Below are positions 1-42,979 of a DNA stretch of 64,000 nucleotides, one piece after another. The notes below the pieces were generated by a model. The model had not been told where the DNA came from and searched no databases. It saw only the letters and a list, made by a program, of their open reading frames with translations. Where the stretch lies: positions 1-64,000 of the forward strand of contig CDRNVI010000002.1 in the NCBI GenBank assembly GCA_977017575.1. The letters run 5' to 3'. Made by a program: the position numbers and the translations under genes. The first letter of the stretch is position 1. Every line of letters starts with the position of its first letter. Source of the DNA: Paramoeba atlantica (Eukaryota > Protista > Discosea).

Positions 1-760
1 CTGGTTCTCTATCAGGGCGACGCCCTTGCGCCTTATCTTTTTGTCCTTGTTTTAGACCGCATTCTCTATCAGGCTTTAGGTCGCAATGCAAGTGGTATTC
101 TCATGAGAAGCGAGGGGGCTAGGAGTCGTGGTATTAAGGGATTCCGGGTGTCAGACGTTGACTACGCAGACGATGTGGCTCTTGTGTCCTCATCTGCGGA
201 GGGTTTGTTGGGTATGGTGGAATCAACAGCACGGGAAGCAGCACCTGCAACCTTGCGCCTTGCCGTAGGAGAATCTAAGACCGCGTGGATGACTTTTGGG
301 AAACCTTCAGGCGCAGATCTTAGTCTTAGCTCAAATTATTGTGGCGCACCAAAGGTACCCAAGTACAGACATCTTTGCAACCTCCAAGGAGGACAGGGAA
401 CCATTAAAGATAGGCTGAGGTTGGCATGGGCAGCTTTTACAAAGCTTCGGGGTATTTGGGTGGCCCCACTTAAACCTTCTACAGAGCTTAGGTTGTTTGA
501 TGCTCTCGTGTACCCGGTTCTAAACTTTTTCTCGGGGGCTATATCGGTTCCTCTAGAGACGGTGCATTGACGTACAAGTAAACGTCGTGCGGAGAACGGC
601 ATGCAATACCGGTCGGTTGGATGAATTCCAAAAGTCATCCACGCGGTCTTAGATTCTCCCCCGCGGTCTCTTCTTCTCTCATTACTCAGCAAACGTCGCC
701 GCTTTTTTCAGATGCACTCCGATATTATGAAGCCTGCGTTAATTTTTAACGTTCCGCATA
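1..760 (+). mobile_element. Degenerate non-LTR retrotransposon reverse transcriptase C-terminal part (RTE-like), 5'-truncated by the window
   Basis: Frame 1 from base 1 reads LVLYQGDALAPYLFVLVLDR...DVDYADDVALV (RT motifs QGDxLxPxLF and YADD, YADD at 163-174), then GESKTAWMTFG, AWAAFTKLRGIW...ELRLFDALVYPVL and, after stops, LLSKRRRFFQMH, as in the RTE-type post-RT region; in-frame stops at 568-570 and downstream. Confidence 0.85.
268..659. repeat. Perfect 32-bp inverted repeat pair (268-299 / 628-659)
   Basis: GGAGAATCTAAGACCGCGTGGATGACTTTTGG at 268-299 and its exact reverse complement at 628-659. Confidence 0.95.
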
Positions 761-2309: not shown

Positions 2310-3222
2310 TTAAATACTTGGTCTAAGCTAGCCTTTTTTTAAATTATTCTATTTGAATTGTTTTATTATGAATTATTCTATTTGAAAGTAGTAACTACTG
2401 CTTTTTAAGTAGTAACTTTAGTAATTACTAGTCTAGGCTATGATAATCTGTCCGTTTTCTTTAGCTTTCTCGGCCGAATTTTCTTTTTTAGGCTCTTCGT
2501 TAAATGCGGTTGTTGTTTTCAACGCGAAGCGCGCAGCATGAGCGACTTCTAAGTTCCCTGATGGGAGGGTCCGGTGAGGCTCCCGGTGAGGCGCCGGAGT
2601 TGCGAGAGGCCTCCATACATCACAACCCCCTTTATATTTAGAGGAGATTGCGGTGGTTGTAAACTACCGCTCTACCCTCGATTATTGAAAAAAAAGTGAA
2701 TAAAAACAGTGAAAATATAAGGAGGAACACAGTAATATAACAGAAGAAAAAAATATAAAAGGGGGCCCCGGGGGTCCAAAACTAGAAAAAAAAAATTCAA
2801 AAAAATGGGGGGTCAAGGGGGGGGGACGTCCATACGTCGCGATTTATTTTTCGAAATGGAGCGCAGGGAAGTGGTAGAGTAGGCCGCGGCGATAATTTTC
2901 CACCCCACCCCTGGTACGCGCAGAAGGGGTCCGACAAGGTCGAAATTTCCGAAATTTTTGGGATGACCCGAAAAAAAATTTAACCAAAAAAAAAAGAAAA
3001 AATATTATTTTTCGAAAATCGACTCCTAAAACGTATTTTGAGAGTTTGGGACCTCAGCTACCATTCTACGACATTTTTATTGACAGATTCGCCTCCTCTC
3101 CCCACTGGTAAGGCATCCAAAACGACCCAAATTCGGGTTAAAATTTCGCAATTTTCGCCTAAAAATCAAGCTTTTTTACCCAAAAAAATAGATTATTCAT
3201 GATCTTTTGGCGATTTTTCTTT

Positions 3223-3325
3223 TTTAGGCTCTTCGTGAAACGCGGTGGTAGTTTTCAACGCGAAGCGCGCAGCATGAGTGACTTCTAAGTTGAAAACAAC
3301 CACCGCGTTTACCGAAGAGCCTAAA
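3223..3325. mobile_element. 103-bp hairpin MITE (37-bp arms, 29-nt spacer)
   Basis: TTTAGGCTCTTCGTGAAACGCGGTGGTAGTTTTCAAC - spacer - GTTGAAAACAACCACCGCGTTTACCGAAGAGCCTAAA; second full copy at 39600-39704. Confidence 0.85.
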
Positions 3326-3544
3326 TAAACTTTTGCTAGTTATATAATAAACTATTGCTAGTTTTGGACTGACCAATTGCTAGTTTCAAAAAAACAACAA
3401 CTTGCGAAGAAAGAGCAAGATTGTTCAGTCACGTGTTTTTCGCGACCAAACCACGTGATCGTTTTAGAAAAATGATGCAGATTCTCCAAGAATCATCGAA
3501 TCTCACCATTTTCGATCCCGAGGAATTAGAAGAAGACCAAGACA

Positions 3545-3907: not shown

Positions 3908-4177
3908 ATAGCAATTTGAGCGAAGGAAAACTTAGAAGGCACCACTACTGCGCACTTCGCGTTGAAAACTGCCACCACTTTTAAGGAAGAGCCTAAAAAA
4001 GCCTAATTGGTTCACCCGCACTCAAACTGTACCCAAAAACACGTTTTGTTAAAACAAATGCCTCCTTCGACCACCGGAACCCCTTTCTATATTTTTTCTT
4101 CTATCACAGTGTATAGACTATGTAGTACATTTATGCAGTACTTTTAGTAATTACCAGTTTACTAGTAAGTTTTTTTT

Positions 4178-4230
4178 AAACGCGGTGGTTGTTTTCAACT
4201 TAGAAGTTACCCGAGCTGCGCAACCACCGC
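4178..4230. repeat. Deleted copy of the 103-bp hairpin family
   Basis: AAACGCGGTGGTTGTTTTCAACTTAGAAGTTACCCGAGCTGCGCAACCACCGC matches an arm plus the spacer in reverse orientation. Confidence 0.7.
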
Positions 4231-35277: not shown

Positions 35278-35487
35278 ACATTTTTAGTGTTTTAAGACTG
35301 ACTTTCAAAGAAAAATATGTATAATTCATTCGCTTGCTAAAACGTCGGAAACATCGCCTAAAGATCCTTGCGGGTAAGTTACATTGCACACAAGAAGGAA
35401 TGGTGCACTACTTAAAAAAAGACATTCTTGTACCTGCATGATACTCGTACTGTACCCTTACAAACTCTATATACTGCATAAAATTAT

Positions 35488-36891
35488 TCACTGAGGCATA
35501 CGTCTTACCGGTCGGCCCACGGGGTGGCTCACATACCCATAACGTGAGTGCGAAGGCAAGGAGGGTTTGGACTCCCGCCGCACTGGCCCTCCGGGAGTCA
35601 CCCGTGAGACCATTTCAGCAGGTCGCTTCGGTGCCGAGGCGCTCCCATACGTAGTGGTCTGACTTTGGTTTGCGGTGCGGTAACCCGCCGTTGAGCTGGA
35701 GCTCTGCACACTCCCCCGGTGCGGCCGCTGTACCGCAACCCGTTCCCCCACGGCGGCTTGATAGCCTACTGAATGACGTGAGGCCGCAGCGGTGACTCCG
35801 GGTCGACTCAGGAGCTTCGGGATGTACCCCAGTTCAGTTTTCGCGACTCTCTCCTTCCTTTTGCGCTGCGCAATGTCCTCATAGAGGTAGTTGCGGTACT
35901 CTGCTACCGTGTAACGAGTGTCGTCACTGAGGGGTATGACAATCGGTGAGGAGCACGTGGGTTCCTCTGACGGGTTGTGAAAAGCCGCGACATAGGGATG
36001 TGCAATCGCTTCCTGGGCGTTGAGTCGCTTCTTTGGATGAAACCGTAGCAGTCGCCGCATGAAATCCACTGCGTCATGTGGGGCCTCCGGGAACACCTCC
36101 TCGAAGCTCCGGGGGGTAACCCGTCCCATATTCTCCAACATTGTGTTAACGTACGGACTGTGTATCCCGGAGCGGTCCCCTGCACTAGGGTATCCAATCA
36201 ACCCGATAATGCGTTCAAGCTGGTTCATCGTAGAGGTCCCTGGGAACAATGGTTTTCCTAGAATCATTTCCCCTGCAATGCAGCCCACGCTCCACATGTC
36301 CACTCCAAAGGTGTAGGTGGTGGAGCCCAGCAGTATCTCCGGCGCTCGGTACCACCGCGTCGCTACATAGTCCGTTAACGCTGGACGGGCCACGTGCGGT
36401 TCCGAACTCACCACGGACCGGGCCAAACCAAAATCTGCCACCTTCATAAAGCACTCCGAGTTCAGCAGCAGGTTCGAGGGCTTCAGGTCGCGGTGCAGAA
36501 GCTTTCCTGAATGCAGGTAGAGCAACGTCTTGAGCAGTTGGTACGTCACGAACCGTTTGTGAATATCCTCGAGAATGCTCACCCGGATGACGCTGTGAAG
36601 GTCGGTGGCCATGTACTCGAATACGAGGTAAAGATCTTTGTCATTTTCTGCGCGATGTACATTTAAAAGCTTTACCACATTGTCGTGCTTCAAACGATGT
36701 AGAAACATCACTTCGCGAAACGTGCGTTGAGCATCGGTAGAGTTTTGAAAAGCGTCGAAGATCTTCTTTACCGCGACCAAACGTCGCGTACGACGATCGA
36801 CTGCCTTCCAAACCACACCATACGCACCCTTGCCGAGTTGCTGCAGCAACTCGTACCTTCGGGAAATGTGGGGTTCTACTTCGGAGGACAT
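35488..36891 (-). CDS. Mitogen-activated protein kinase, ERK7/8 (MAPK15)-type with TDY loop
   Basis: LGKGAYGVVWKA, VKKIFDAFQNSTDAQRTFRE, HRDLKPSN, DFG, TDYVATRWYRAPE. Confidence 0.95.
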   Translation of the reverse strand: MSSEVEPHISRRYELLQQLGKGAYGVVWKAVDRRTRRLVAVKKIFDAFQNSTDAQRTFREVMFLHRLKHDNVVKLLNVHRAENDKDLYLVFEYMATDLHSVIRVSILEDIHKRFVTYQLLKTLLYLHSGKLLHRDLKPSNLLLNSECFMKVADFGLARSVVSSEPHVARPALTDYVATRWYRAPEILLGSTTYTFGVDMWSVGCIAGEMILGKPLFPGTSTMNQLERIIGLIGYPSAGDRSGIHSPYVNTMLENMGRVTPRSFEEVFPEAPHDAVDFMRRLLRFHPKKRLNAQEAIAHPYVAAFHNPSEEPTCSSPIVIPLSDDTRYTVAEYRNYLYEDIAQRKRKERVAKTELGYIPKLLSRPGVTAAASRHSVGYQAAVGERVAVQRPHRGSVQSSSSTAGYRTANQSQTTTYGSASAPKRPAEMVSRVTPGGPVRRESKPSLPSHSRYGYVSHPVGRPVRRMPQ

Positions 36892-37104
36892 AGCATGCGC
36901 GTATACAAATACTAAGCACCAATTTTATGTTCCGATTCGGTAAAACAAATAGTATGTATTTCAGGGGAAAAGTGGAAAAATTGAAACCTTTCTAACACAT
37001 CAAAAACAGGGAAAAGATATTAAAAAAGCCAATACCTCGGTCAACACAAAATTTTGTCTATAGTACATACCGTCGCACTCGGAGTTCTATGACCAAAATT
37101 GAAA

Positions 37105-37680
37105 TTCTACCTTGTTGTTTTTTTCTGTACCTTGTTGATCTACCCCATGTACCCCTTCACCCCCGTTCCCCGCGCCCTTCGCCGTCTCCCCGCCGTTCTC
37201 CCCGCCGTGCTTCCCGCCGCGCTCCCGTCGCTTTCCCGCCGCTGTCCCGCTGCTCCCCCGTCGCTTTCCCGCCGTGTGCCTTCTATGGTTGAGGTACTCT
37301 CATGGCGGCACAGGTGCGTCGAGCATCGGCATCCGCACAGCGCACCTAGGCTGAAACTAGGGAGCCATATCTCCTCGGAGACAAACGGCTCTGTGAACCA
37401 ACCAACCAACCTCCTTCTTTGAAGGCGCGTGGAGGACTGGTTGCCCCTCTCGTAGGGACCGCTGGTCAGTGTGGCCTATCCTCACTGCGTCTCCGACTAC
37501 CGTCCTCGGTGAAGTGCCAGCCGTGGCTTGCTACGGCTGGCTCGCCCGCCGGTCCGCAAGGACCGGTCGTACGCATCGGAGTAACATCCGAGCCGTCGGG
37601 CCCCTCACGTGGACGGTAGAGGGCCCATAACCTGTCAAGGCCAAAAGGGTGCAAGAATTATCATCATCATCATCATGACC
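37105..37680 (+). mobile_element. SL-headed, structured, non-coding insert (element 1) with an (ATC)n tail
   Basis: TTTCTGTACCTTGTTG at 37122-37137 plus a degenerate tandem copy at 37105-37117; C-rich short tandem repeats; hairpins at 37517-37540 and 37549-37566 (GCAA loop); CATAACC at 37626-37632; (ATC)5-6 at 37660-37676. Confidence 0.6.
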
Positions 37681-38217
37681 GAAATGTATACGATAAAAAA
37701 GATATAACATACGATAGCATACAAGATGTAAGAATACATGTAAGAATGTTTGACATGCTTTCGTTTTTAATTCCTTTAACTTTGCTCTCACACAGTAAAT
37801 TTTTCCCAGTAACTGACGTCAAGAGATTCCCACCATCGATCACTCGACACCAATTTATCGGCTTGTTTTATTTTCTTGTTGCTTTCGAAAGGCGGTTGGT
37901 CGGAAACGTTTTTACGATAAGCGTACCACACATTTTTTTCTGTGTCCCACTTTGCAAACCGTGTCGGAAGGCTATCGATTTTTAAGTCTTTTTTCGGAGA
38001 ATAATAGACGCAAATCTTTTTAAGGTCGTGCGGGGCCCGTTCTTTGTCAACGTAAATCGTGACGCGATTATCAAAAATGGATACGAAGTTGGTCGAGTCT
38101 GGCATCTGAGAGATGTCAACTTCGCCCTCAAATTTATTTCTTGCCAGGGCTAGCTGCTTGATTGACGAGGGAACACGTGATAAATCTAACCGTCCGGTAA
38201 AGGAGTTATTATGCAAG

Positions 38218-38833
38218 GGTTATGATCATACGCTCGTGGCGCAGAGATGCGTCTCTCTGTGTGACGGCCGATACCATCGGCGCATGACCCGCATACGACG
38301 GGTGTCACACAGAGAGTGGAGTGCGAGGTAGGAGACGAGACGCCCATCGGTCATGCTACAGCACGTATAGCCATGGTTCATGCTGCAACACGGTCAAGCC
38401 GTGGGTTCATGCTGTCAGATGGTCTATCGTGGATCATGATGCATCATGGGGAGGTCCGTTACCGCCGCACTCGCTACAGCATGTAGGGAGAGAGGGGTGC
38501 AAGTTCGCATCCCCTATACACTCATACAACGTGTCCTCCCGCTGTAGCACGCCCAGTGGTCCTCAAGGGAGGCCACCATGGCGCATAGCTCCCGGGAGAA
38601 GAAAGCACGAGAAGGAGAGAGCCGGGGAGGGAAGAAAGCTCACTCGAAGAGAGCGAGCCGGGGAGGGGTGAAGAGTGCGAAGTGCGTCCCCTACTTCCGC
38701 GACAAAGAGGGACAGTTTCAGCTAGCCGTCAGCCGGAAACGGGCATTTAAAAGTAAGAATACGCCCGTTTCCGGGAAAAGAAAGGAAGGGCTAGCAAAAT
38801 GTACCAACAAGGTACAGAAACTGTATCTTTATA
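38218..38833 (-). mobile_element. SL-headed, structured, non-coding insert (element 2)
   Basis: Minus strand begins (TATA)AAGATACAGTTTCTGTACCTTGTTG|GTACA, followed by nested stems, purine/pyrimidine tandem repeats and a 3-way junction at 38253-38316; ends CATAACC. Confidence 0.8.
38805..38833 (-). ncRNA. Spliced-leader exon 3' portion (~nt 11-39) with GT donor
   Basis: TATAAAGATACAGTTTCTGTACCTTGTTG-GTA versus bodonid-type SL ATAAAAGATACAGTTTCTGTACTTTATTG-GTA (recalled consensus); SL 5' end AACTAACGCT absent. Confidence 0.75.
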
Positions 38834-39599
38834 ACATGTTCAGTGAATCGGGAAGAACACTTAAATCAAGTTTGCCTTCGAGCATATTATGATCCAGAAA
38901 CAGGTGTGATAAAGTCGAAGGCAAGGACTCAAAAAACACGACACCTGAAAATCTATTCCAGTCTAACAAAAGATCTAACATTGTGGGAGGTAAGGCGACC
39001 AAGTCGAGTTCCCCGTGACACTGATTATATCTTCCCCATAGACTCTGTAAAGTGCGCGGAAGTTCTCTTAGAGCAAGTTCTCCATCTAACCGATTGTCAT
39101 CTAGGTGTATGGTTTCAAGTTTTCCCGCTTCACGCCCCAGCTTTATAGATCCGGTAAGAAGATTGTTATTTACATCTACACTTCGTACTGTTTTAGGAAG
39201 ATGCGCAAAATCCATACTTCCTTGCAGATCGCGGCCGTCCCATTCTATTTCGTCGATTTCCCCGCTTTCGAGTACATTAATTCCATCCCACTTACAAGCA
39301 GGATTGTCTACTACCCAAGTTACATGAGGATTAGTTAGATTTGCCACGAGACGGGCCAAATGAAATTCCGGAGCAAGCACAGTCCTATGTATCTTAGAGG
39401 GTCGCTTCTGGTGTTCATACCCGTACACATGGACAACGCTCCGCATTAATACCATTCGAATAGTTTCATAAGTGCATATTTCATAAGTATGTACATACAG
39501 TTGTATTGTAGGTAGCACATGTTACAAATAGTAGGCCCCCATTTATAGCGCCGCGGTGTACGCCCGCACGTATTGGGGCATTTTAAAAACAAATAGTTT

Positions 39600-39704
39600 T
39601 TTAGGCTCTTCATTAAACGTGGTGGTTGTTTTCAACTTAGTCAAGTCACTCGTGCTGCGCGCTTCGCGTTGAAAACTACCTCCGCATTTAACGAAGAGAC
39701 TAAA
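39600..39704. mobile_element. Second full copy of the 103-bp hairpin MITE (opposite spacer orientation)
   Basis: TTTAGGCTCTTCATTAAACGTGGTGGTTGTTTTCAAC..CTGCGCGCTTCGC-GTTGAAAACTACCTCCGCATTTAACGAAGAGACTAAA. Confidence 0.85.
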
Positions 39705-39859
39705 AAAGGAAATTTGATCAGGAAAGCCGAAGAATATTTGAGCGAAAAATAGCCGATTTTTAGGTAAAAATGGGGGTATTCTTGCGTATTTTTGCCCTCA
39801 GAACACTAAATCTTAAAGTACATGTAGTAGCAGTAATATACACGCTGTTGAATCCTTTT

Positions 39860-42730
39860 TTACTTCCTACCGCTACTCTTTCTCTCCCCTGGAGCAAGCC
39901 CATGACCCGACGTCGGCGTGGCCATCGGGGATCCAAGGATTCCATTACTGGGCTTAACGCCCCACTATCCTCGACCTCAGGGGGACCTGCTACCACCCCT
40001 CTCAGGCGAGGCTCCAGCCCCCATCCCTCCCTAGGGGTCGAGGGGCTGCGCCAGCTCTCCATCGAGGAGCTGAAGAAGGCGAGGTCGGACTTGGTCGTCC
40101 GAGTCAAGGAGCAGCACAAGACATGTGCATGTGACTTCTGTGGCCTCCCTTTCGTGCCAATCAGGCGGTACAACCGCCTGTGTGATGAGTGCGTCTCTCT
40201 GCGCTCTCGGCACAGGAACTACATACGAGCGCGTGCTTTGACGCAAGCCTCTGGGACCCCTCCATCCCGTTCCACGTCTTCCTCCCGATCCTCCCGCGCC
40301 AAGTCCCCGGCCTGCAGGATCACACGCTCTTCTTCCTCTAGGGGCCGATCCCGGAGCGTAAACCGTACAGGTACTACGGTTGCCCCACCCCTATCCTCAG
40401 GAAATCGGCTAACGTCTCCTTTGCTCATCTCCCTACCTCCGACAGCCACCGCGCGTCCTACGCCCGCGTCTCGATGCCAGGCACGGAGACCGCCCCTCAG
40501 TCCGCGTCGGACATTATGGATAGTGACGCCCCCACCCAGGCGGAGCACCCGCTTAACCTGCCTACTCTAGGACAACAGTTTAAGGCTATGGACGCCGTGC
40601 GTCTCAAGCTCCTCCCCGCCCCCCTCTGTTCGGGGCGCCCTCTTGCGGAAACCGGCAGATGCTCCGCCTCTTTACGTCTTTACTCTGCCCTTCACTCGGA
40701 ACAAGAGAGGGTTTCCCTAGAGGAAATGGAGGTCAGGGCCCGTCGCGAGCTCCTCCTAGAGGCCATCAGTGGCTTACACGCCGCTCAGAAGGCCATCGAA
40801 GACCGCCTTTTCCTTATTAATCCGGGTCACCTAGTCTGCATCGAATGTCGACTACCCCAACCCCACCATGTTGCCCTACAAGCCCACCTCATCAAGGTGC
40901 ACGGGCCCAAGCGCCTTAGGAAAGCGTCTTTGGTCCTGCTTAAGGAACATGCCCCGGAAGCTCTCCGGATCAAAACCGAACGATACGCCACCCTGATGGC
41001 TTCGTACGCGGAGTTTTGCGCGGAGGAAGCCCGCTTGCGCTTGGCCCAGGTCTCCACCGAGCCCCACGGGCCCCCATGGCTCCTGCCCCCCCAACACTCC
41101 CCCCCTTCCTCCTTCCCCACCTCCCCCCTCACCTTTCCCCCCATTTCTCCTGGCGGACGGGCCGGGCGTACAAAGGGCACCGGCGAGAGCATCTACAGGG
41201 GAGGCACCGAATAAACCATTCGAACCGGAAGGAAAGGATGTTTTTAAAATACTCCTAGACTTTGGCCCCGAGCGCTCGAGCTATATCATCATCCCTTGCC
41301 CGCCCGAACGCTCGTTCCAAGCGATCATAGGCATAGTGGGCAACACCCTAGGGGTCCCGGGAGAGAGCCTACTCTTGAAAGACATTTCAGGAGAAGTCAC
41401 CTCCATCACCGACTGGAACGGGCTGGACCGTGCGCAACGAATCGCGGTCAGTTTGTCCCTTCCCCTCCTTTCCCCAGGGCCTGGCGACAGGCCCACACTC
41501 AGGGTGTATGATGGGACCCGTCACGGCTTGGTTTCGACCCCAGGTCTGAACGCGGCTCATGACATCCCCGCGGGGCTCAATGAGAGCCTAGGAATACCTC
41601 GGATCATGACCGGGGCTTGAGAGCCCCGCCAATACGAGGAAGGGCTCCTGTGGTGTTTCCTCCCCACGGAGACCCTTGTGAGTGAAACGGGTTGGACTAC
41701 CCGAGTACTCCAATGTAACCTCCGCAGAGGCTGCATTGAGGCGAATCCAGGCCCTCGATCTAAGTCGAGGCGAGCCTTAGGGGATACCCATAGTGCCCAA
41801 ACCGCCGGGGCGGTAACCCCTGCCCCGGTTAGGGAAGGCACCATATTGGAAGGGATTGCGGCAGCGACCTCTCCCCATAGCCCCTCCCGCCAGGATGGCA
41901 AACCCCCCACCCCTCCCCCGCCTCCATACCCCCATCTCATAGGGGCGGACCCTCCCGACAAGGCCCCCCACTTCACGCCCCCTAATACCCAAGGCGCGGT
42001 AACCGAGTAGGGTGACATCACGCCCTCCCCGGACAGCCTGGCACAGCTCCTTGAAAGGGGCTCGCTGCGTACTCTTTACGCAGTCCAATGCCCCCCTTGG
42101 AAGGACTACGTCACGTCGGTGTGCAGCAACTTCTTGGGGAAGTCCATACGACGGAAAGCTCAAGATCGCCTGGGATCTCCTTCTCGGGGTCAAACGGTTC
42201 TTGTTTTTCCCCGAAGACAAGCTATCCCAAAGGCAGCTCGCCCAGGGAGCTTCGCAAAAGGGCTCACCTAGAGGGGTCGGAAACCTTAGCCCCGACCCCT
42301 CCCCTCACCAACAGCTTCCCCCGCTCCGTTATCAAGCGGGGGGTAGAGCTGATTCGGGCAGGGGCCTTCTCCAGGGCGGCCAAGATCTTGGAAGCCCCCC
42401 TCGACCCGCCGGCAAACCCTGTTACGGCGGGGGAACAGGCGAAACGCCTCCGCCCAGCGGGGGGTCCCTATAACACCCCTTTGTCTATGACAAAGACAGT
42501 CATGGACCCCTCCCGTCGGAGGCGGATGTTGCCCGGAAGGCAAGCCTGGCGCCGCTTAGAGCGCCAGGCCCGTCCGGATGGACCAAGGAACTCCTGGTCC
42601 CCATCCTGCAGGAGGGTGAACCGAGGGACGTCGTCACTTGGATCATTCAAGGGATCCTCACCAACTCCCTGCCTCCCACGATGAGGGATAGTGCCGTTTC
42701 GTCTAAAACTGCTGCAAAATGGGCGACATA
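39860..42730 (+). mobile_element. Degenerate CRE/SLACS/CZAR-like non-LTR retrotransposon, 3'-truncated at the start of RT
   Basis: Multi-frameshift ORF: CxxC..CxxC (40124-40192), C2H2 finger CIEC-x12-H-x4-H (40837-40902), Pro-rich linkers, GCIEANPGP (41729-41755), RGVELIRAGAFSRAAKIL..EQAKRLRP, APGPSGWTKELLVP (42561-42602). Confidence 0.8.
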
Positions 42731-42796
42731 TTAGTGCGTACTAATGAGGGGCTGCGGATGACGTAAAGCGCTGTTTCGCGTTGCTTCAAAACTGCG

Positions 42797-42979
42797 TACT
42801 CTCCCCCCTTCCCTTAAGAGCACCCGGCCAGACCCCCCCGTTTAAGCGCACATAAAGTTGAAGGGAAGAGCCCGGCGCCGCGAAGCGGCGCCAATTCTTT
42901 TTACGTAGTGATTCAGACCCCCCCCGTTTAAGCGCACTTTTCGCGGAAAACGAGGTGCGCTTAAACGGGGGGGACAGTA
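42797..42979. mobile_element. MITE, pogo-like TACTRT-C7 end class (core GTTTAAGCGCAC)
   Basis: Left TACTCTCCCCCCTTCCCTTAAGAGCACC; right (reverse complement) TACTGTCCCCCCCGTTTAAGCGCACC; two internal CCCCCCCGTTTAAGCGCAC copies; GGCGCCGCGAAGCGGCGCC hairpin. Confidence 0.8.

Follow-up and report, generated by a model that had tools for sequence, protein, structure and literature searches.

The DNA analyzed was a stretch of 64,000 nucleotides (the window), in which every long open reading frame (ORF) apart from one degenerate retroelement lies on the minus strand; the gene set therefore forms a single polycistronic array. Within this array, a leucine-rich repeat (LRR) gene (39455 to 37788) is interrupted by an insert of 612 bp, here termed Element 2, which lies in the sense orientation relative to both the gene and the array (Table 1). 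The LRR ORF runs through several 23-residue repeats to ...LPDSLNML and then meets a TAA codon at 38831-38829, the T of which is a base of the LRR gene and the AA the initial bases of the insert. The reading frame is picked up again at 38216, where LHNNSFTGRLDLS... encodes LHNNSFTG. Element 2 opens with AAAGATACAGTTTCTGTACCTTGTTG followed directly by GTAC, closes with ...GTATGATCATAAC, and has a GC content of 56%, compared with approximately 42% in the LRR gene. An earlier note on this DNA had placed the insert at 38218-38833; the site was right, but the ends were 1 to 3 bases too wide.

Table 1. Features in and around the interrupted LRR gene (window coordinates)
Feature	Position	Strand	Description
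N-terminal part of LRR gene	38831..39455	-	Start codon (ATG) at 39455; last residues ...LPDSLNML, followed by the first base of the split codon; 62% identity to paralogue P0001 and 52% to P0002
Element 2 insert	38219..38830	-	612 bp; defined by the empty site and nine copies
SL head	38805..38830	-	Last 26 nt of the SL exon (28 with AT at 38832-38831); SL nt 11/13 to 38; identical to L012 positions 26-53, minus strand
GTACATTTTGCTAG	38791..38804	-	Donor-like GT directly after the exon; 14-nt GT..AG piece; exactly absent in the L003/L009 subfamily
5' module (nt 1-283)	38548..38830	-	Conserved; 76-91% identity between subfamilies; hairpin across exon end, long hairpin, further hairpins
Pyrimidine-rich stretch	about 38676-38594	-	Within the 5' module; then AG at 38590-38589
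Variable middle	38321..38547	-	Not alignable between subfamilies
3' module (102 nt)	38219..38320	-	13-bp stem around two hairpins, small hairpin, terminal ...ATGATCATAAC
C-terminal part of LRR gene	37788..38218	-	Opens with the other two bases of the split codon and continues LHNNSFTG...; stop at 37788
Element 1	37105-37631	+	Antisense to the array; occupies the spacer that separates the LRR gene from the MAP kinase gene
Palindromic MITE-like repeat	39590-39734, 2457-2555, 3211-3335, 3929-4001, 4160-4221		Approximately 500x single-copy depth
GC-rich element	39770-42979	+	Antisense to the array; called a CRE-like element in the earlier note

Two uninterrupted paralogues (P0001 and P0002; 344 and 345 amino acids, respectively; assembly ENA ERZ24900291) are colinear with both pieces of the LRR gene and have one residue between them (LDTLQLHNN and LHTLSLHNN), and the breakpoints thus hold against an uninterrupted alignment. 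Contigs from three DNA runs of the same organism (X1 to X3) were aligned to positions 35400-40400 of the window (5,001 bases); the runs were taken as DNA on the basis of their contigs of 158-228 kb and their even cover of genes and spacers, and depths derived from them are rough, as they are stored as contigs. Contigs of all three runs contained an empty site in which 38216 is linked to 38831 via CG alone, giving a net 612 bp fewer than the filled allele and reading LNMLSLHNN; a second variant of the empty site has GCG between the same positions. The flank is CG in the empty allele and CC in the filled allele, at most a one-base difference, and no target-site duplication (TSD) was found when filled and empty sites were compared. 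The earlier note had read the locus as an insertion of 612 bp without target duplication, the removal of which restores a perfect repeat, and had expected an empty allele; on each of these points it was confirmed.

As the filled site and a clean empty site occur in the same DNA libraries, the site is polymorphic and Element 2 is mobile. Between 38948 and 39309, two versions of the LRR gene approximately 8% apart were present at similar depth in run X2, and the empty site goes with the version missing from the assembly. Element 2 is therefore carried either by a single haplotype of a divergent pair or by a single member of a very recent duplicate pair. The filled allele is broken: its 5' junction bears a stop codon, and the frame is not restored by any GT..AG pair close to the borders.

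In the sense strand of Element 2 the longest stretch free of stop codons is 68 codons and no ORF was identified; the two ORFs on the antisense strand (104 and 116 amino acids) matched only other copies of the element. There is neither an A-run nor a poly(A) tail at the 3' end, and the termini have no inverted repeats, such that the earlier description of an insert with no ORF, poly(A), TIR, or TSD stands. With neither terminal inverted repeats nor a TSD, a DNA transposon or MITE was rejected. A BLAST search of the element against the window revealed no further copies there.

The first 26 nt of Element 2, together with the preceding AT, are identical to 28 of 28 nt of the canonical spliced-leader (SL) exon on JGI metagenome contig Ga0316204_10168667 (L012), a match that is judged to be more than chance. 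The exon is 38 nt in length, of which Element 2 carries only the last 26-28; because the AT before AAAG is also found in the window's empty allele, its assignment to the head is ambiguous. L012 comes from a close environmental relative. Its canonical SL gene has the exon at positions 26-63 (minus strand, 38 nt), followed by GTATGAGAAGCTTCGAAC, with a 5S rRNA gene at 450-568 (plus strand) approximately 390 bp away (region 1-700). The L012 intron start matches the main SL gene of the window's organism for 18 nt and then diverges. A high-copy contig of that organism exits the window right after ...CCTTGTTGGTA (loose end at 38802) and continues with the GTATGAGAAGCTTCGAAC intron start; this is the genome's main SL gene. 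After GTA, the post-exon sequence of Element 2 (GTACATTTTGCTAGCC...) is unrelated to the main SL intron, and, unlike on L012, no 5S gene is linked to it. No complete 38- to 39-nt SL exon behind a promoter was identified, nor do the end and start of Element 2 rebuild one when joined, the bases around SL nt 4-10 being missing or different. The earlier note had proposed a unit built from the SL RNA gene itself that drops a sense SL exon and a GT donor into the pre-mRNA. The sense orientation and the GT were correct, but the exon is partial, and given this, the different post-exon sequence, and the lack of a linked 5S gene, an origin from the SL RNA gene itself is not supported.

Most units have GTAC after the exon, and one (L008i) has GTAA. 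In the L003/L009 subfamily, the exon runs straight into CCCTTCC at a point immediately behind an AG, and the loss of the 14 nt listed in Table 1 looks like a splice junction and not a random deletion. When the SL was aligned with that of Trypanosoma cruzi on their common GATACAGTTTCTGTAC core, the commonest start of Element 2 copies, 5 nt before GATACAG, was found to be the base after the nt 11/12 site. Searches for a small-RNA-gene head with an internal Pol III promoter, as in SINEs, found no tRNA, 5S, or 7SL. Rfam yielded nothing in the whole window at the gathering score and only chance-level matches in 37000-39000 at E values up to 10, with no known ribozyme, SL, 5S, or snRNA family in the Element 2 region, and ARAGORN detected no tRNA, either in 36900-39800 or on contig L012. 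An exact search with one protein of the window, aimed at reading the mature SL at an mRNA 5' end, returned nothing on record.

The element as a whole folds much better than shuffled sequences do, with a z score of -8.5. Between subfamilies, four compensatory pairs were identified in the 5' module and compensatory changes in 6 of the 32 pairs of the 3' module, covariation that is based on only two or three diverged units. A search of 190 kb with a covariance model of the 3' module (R1) recovered all units and no other convincing match, and no other elements ending ...ATGATCATAAC were present in the same 190 kb. Because the tail covaries, the 3' module would act as RNA, for example as a reverse transcriptase recognition signal, and not as a promoter; its conservation argues for an RNA recognition signal.

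Three neighboring features were also examined. Element 1 consists of SL 3' fragments of 10 nt and 13 nt, with T7 between them, which at the exon end give way to a C-rich, hairpin-rich body of unrelated sequence ending CCCATAAC; parts of it are multicopy. It has in common with Element 2 only the SL fragment and CATAAC, without the body or tail module, and was not matched by model R1. The palindromic repeat is MITE-like and occurs at five places in the window. No Pfam domain was found in the two longest ORFs of the GC-rich element at 39770-42979, and no SL fragment was found at its 5' end.

From the same assembly (ERZ24900291), 10 to 11 further units were identified. The sample analyzed comprised 12 units of perhaps several dozen and was picked by spurious-ORF bait, that is, by antisense ORFs that had been called as genes. 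Nine copies are of the Element 2 type (the window copy and L003, L004, L005, L006B, L007, L009, L010, and L011) and share 95.8-99.7% identity, while their flanks are unrelated and represent different loci, which indicates a young family. The remaining three units (L006A, L008i, and L008ii) belong to diverged subfamilies and have in common with Element 2 only nt 1-283 (76-91% identity) and the last ~100 nt. Units are approximately 0.57-0.61 kb long; copies other than that in the window range from 581 to 612 bp, and most are not multiples of three. In the DNA runs, the body of the element was present at approximately 20-40x single-copy depth and the bin containing the SL head at approximately 230x. 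The polymorphic site, the depth of the body, and the nine near-identical copies at different loci agree with the earlier view of a discrete mobile unit acting as an insertional mutagen. The features of a SINE found here are a short, noncoding, dispersed sequence in many copies with defined ends, and 3' ends that are uniform where 5' ends are variable or truncated.

The 3' ends are the more regular of the two. Six copies (the window copy and L003, L004, L006B, L007, and L010) end ...CA[TC][AG]AC, and three (L005, L009, and L011) end in a variant one base longer. At the 5' end, six heads begin AT AAAG and the others begin 1 to 12 bases further in, with starts observed at SL nt 11, 13, 14, 16, 20, and 23. 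L011 is 5' truncated, beginning at Element 2 nt 32 behind filler, and its 3' end is intact. Stuttered partial SL copies lie between the LRR flank and the 5' end of the element in L005 (6458-6501) and L006 (2117-2132, minus strand), as in the series AAAGATACAGTTTCT, then AAGATACAGT, then the full head; these pieces look like the product of template switching at the 5' junction. L006 holds a head-to-tail dimer of units from two subfamilies, in which the younger unit adjoins the downstream half of the LRR gene. In a low-depth contig of run X2 (over 38218-38822), an element 3' end (...CATAACC) is followed, after a single additional base, by AGTTTCTGTACC; this is a head-to-tail junction with eight head bases missing, located elsewhere in the genome. 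Among the units examined, there were no arrays beyond the L006 dimer and this one joint. Two partial sequences were also noted. An SL fragment with only 37 nt of the 5' module, followed by unrelated sequence (L008, 5374-5435, minus strand), is either a broken copy or a different element with the same head, and a sequence upstream of a paralogue gene (L001, 9443-9551), which weakly matches the 3' module and no other part, is possibly a relic consisting of that module only.

Eight of 11 independent insertions lie in LRR genes (the window copy, L003, L005, the L006 pair, L008ii, L009, L010, and L011), all in the sense orientation and all at one repeat position, LPxxLxxL/xLxxNxFxG, with the slash marking the insertion. 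The junction falls between the fourth and sixth residues of LxxLxLxxNxFxG, so that the flanks read LPxxL(xxL) upstream and (x)LxxNxFxG downstream. The host LRR genes differ from one another, with different codons right up to the junction. The other three insertions (L004, L007, and L008i) are outside LRR genes. That a single position of a 23-codon unit has been struck eight times, always in the sense orientation, is far beyond chance. The earlier note had looked to the junctions of dispersed copies, and shared ends were found; the fixed position in the LRR repeat goes beyond it. A likeness of the LRR target to the SL exon or to the ends of the element was considered and rejected, as only loose matches (AAC TTG and AAY NNN TTY) with inconsistent spacing were found.

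The explanation that we favor, and to which we give roughly an even chance, is that the family is a SINE-like, nonautonomous, RNA-mediated, site-specific retroposon moved by a LINE aimed at an LRR-coding motif. Each unit comprises the final 26-28 nt of the SL exon fused to the structured 5' module, followed by a variable middle and a hairpin-rich 3' module ending ...AAC. A reverse transcriptase/endonuclease supplied in trans, most likely from an R2/CRE-type LINE with a restriction-like endonuclease (RLE), would nick the DNA motif encoding one LRR repeat position, prime on the 3' module, and copy towards the 5' end. The outcome would be an exact 3' junction, a ragged, stuttered, or truncated 5' junction, and no target duplication, the exact 3' and ragged 5' junctions following from priming at the 3' module. 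Target-primed reverse transcription of this type is suggested by the exact 3' end, the ragged 5' end, the lack of a duplication, and the strict orientation, as well as by the young subfamilies, the structured 3' tail, and the fusion of the SL exon, at its splice point, to unrelated sequence. RLE-type elements such as R2 produce 3' junctions that are exact and 5' junctions that are ragged, and R2-like elements are likewise without TSDs. A spliced RNA source is consistent with the exon end being joined to GTAC... in Element 2, to CCCTTCC after an AG in L003/L009, and to the canonical intron in the main SL gene, and the position of the younger L006 unit fits recognition mainly of the downstream LRR half. 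The head start is also homologous to the nt 11/12 site used by CZAR and SLACS. Mobility, the structure of the copies, the target position, and the conserved folds are established by the data; the RNA intermediate, the enzyme, and the way in which the 5' end of the RNA arises are our inference.

Several observations weigh against this retroposon. Model R1 identified no autonomous partner or LINE end with the 3' module in 190 kb. The absence of a poly(A) tail and of a target duplication fits only some LINE clades. No unit-length RNA was detected, one RNA-like run providing a single 153-nt contig that passes through the 3' end of another copy into the flank. Half of the heads begin at SL nt 11, for which the retroposon does not account. 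Finally, the GTA(C/A) after the exon, the SL-RNA-like hairpin, the dimers, and the ...AAC end would also suit a repeat unit of a variant SL gene. The family acts like a nonautonomous non-LTR retroposon yet lacks several formal marks of a SINE, namely a Pol III head, a duplication, and a known partner.

The chief alternative is mobilization at the DNA level, an explanation that is unlikely but deserves serious consideration. Element 2 would then represent one entire unit of a tandem SL-gene repeat of a minor, variant type, opened within the exon at the CRE/SLACS-type site by a site-specific nuclease or recombinase and captured at breaks in LRR genes; the variant leader implied by dimers of the element would begin ...CATAAC plus AAAGATACAG. 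A unit that begins at the homologue of the nt 11/12 site and ends in an ...AAC resembling the first SL bases would be expected on these terms, as would a head that folds like SL RNA, head-to-tail joints such as those in L006 and run X2, and the lack of a target duplication. However, the exon is followed by something other than the main SL intron, the joined end and start fail to rebuild the 38-nt exon, and no array of more than two units was found among those examined. Copies truncated at the 5' end with intact 3' ends and a 3' module that covaries like RNA also oppose it, and the sense orientation of all eight LRR insertions has a chance of approximately 0.008 if orientation is free. Gene conversion or unequal exchange could instead have spread one old LRR insertion to other LRR genes, with the same repeat position and orientation in eight genes and no target duplication as the result. 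This is quite improbable given elements that are 95.8-99.7% identical in host genes whose proteins are 52-62% identical and whose flanking codons differ up to the junction, 5' junctions that vary between copies, and three insertions outside LRR genes.

The sense orientation and a length (612) that is a multiple of three would also suit an intron-like element (introner) that is spliced out and leaves the LRR gene functional. The borders, however, are AA...AC and neither GT...AG nor AT-AC, and the sole in-phase GT..AG choice near them yields a stop codon. A TAA lies on the 5' junction, the lengths of the other copies are mostly not multiples of three, the other haplotype has no insert, and the RNA data, which are very thin, contain no such joint; we therefore hold an introner to be very improbable indeed. 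Short-read unitigs do end at the junctions, as they would at any repeat border, and the earlier note had allowed for a misassembly joining an SL array to the LRR gene. A unit with matching ends is nonetheless present in nine contigs of a long-read-style assembly, with both flanks continuing one gene, and it is scarcely credible that the assembly has falsely linked an SL-related repeat with the LRR gene.

A bolder extension of the retroposon hypothesis, advanced tentatively and rather unlikely as it stands, is a retroelement system, in a kinetoplastid of free-living type, aimed at one LRR codon position, in which the nonautonomous members carry an SL-derived, SL-RNA-like 5' module. If this is true, the 5' module may direct processing of the RNA and so fix its 5' end at the very base where CRE-type elements open the SL exon, and members of a large LRR family would time and again be inactivated, split, or rebuilt by the system, with SL donors scattered through pre-mRNAs. 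Element 2 adds to the pre-mRNA an SL 3' part with a GT and, approximately 200 nt further downstream, a stretch rich in pyrimidines that is followed by an AG, and these signals could conceivably redirect pre-mRNA processing. Such an element would directly generate presence/absence variation among genes of a family whose role is often in recognition, and exact, duplication-free, orientation-specific insertion bears on site choice by RLE-type enzymes. In annotation, its units will mislead twice over, once as spurious SL genes and once as LRR genes that are broken.

The SL core, the one-strand gene array, and an REH2-type helicase on L004 suggest that the host is a kinetoplastid or a close relative. 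The helicase (L004, 6630-12474) is large and has REH2-type double-stranded-RNA-binding domains by Pfam, which fits a kinetoplastid-like host. The SL and the SL-5S-U2 repeat of Diplonema papillatum differ from the SL of the window's organism. Literature searches revealed no SL-headed noncoding elements, SL-derived SINEs, or SL units in LRR genes, in line with the earlier note's failure to recognize a described element. To our knowledge, rRNA, snRNA, SL, and telomere repeats are the targets of site-specific retroelements; were an element aimed at one set position within a protein-coding repeat such as the LRR, this would be a new target class.

Element 2 is neither a member of the CRE clade nor a copy of the main SL repeat. 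Elements of the CRE clade (SLACS, CZAR, and CRE1/2 of trypanosomatids) are tied to the SL exon, which they open between nt 11 and 12 (PMC5814959; PMC12278014), and the commonest 5' end of Element 2 is the homologous base. They are reported to end in poly(A) (PMC12278014), whereas Element 2 has no poly(A) tail and no ORF for a reverse transcriptase or restriction-like endonuclease; its target is an LRR codon and not the SL gene, and it carries part of the SL within itself. With the canonical SL-5S repeat (bodonid type; L012), it shares the last 28 nt of the exon and the GTA that follows, but it has a different intron, no 5S gene, an incomplete exon, and a copy number far below that of the SL exon. 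TcTREZO of T. cruzi, as summarized in a review, is a repeated element found mostly in MASP pseudogenes and site specific for a multigene family (PMC5814959). Judged by that summary, it resembles Element 2 in inserting mostly into one protein-coding gene family; the host gene family is different, and the review reports no fixed codon phase in a repeat and no SL head (PMC5814959).

In general build, Element 2 is closest to SINEs and to R2 SIDEs: it is short and noncoding, with a head, a variable body, and a conserved tail, it forms subfamilies, its 3' end is uniform and its 5' end subject to truncation, and it would depend on an enzyme made elsewhere. SIDEs are short, internally deleted partners of R2. 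Compared with SINEs, the head of Element 2 is a fragment of a Pol II SL exon and not a tRNA, 7SL, or 5S gene, and there is no target duplication. A SINE-like element with an SL head would be new and would link trans-splicing to retroposition outside dinoflagellates. Relic SLs on retroposed dinoflagellate genes were reportedly interpreted by Slamovits and Keeling in 2008 as the mark of trans-spliced RNA copied back into DNA. There, as in Element 2, the SL exon stands at the 5' end of the genomic DNA; the dinoflagellate sequences, however, are mRNA retrocopies at scattered sites, whereas Element 2 represents a dedicated noncoding family with a fixed target.
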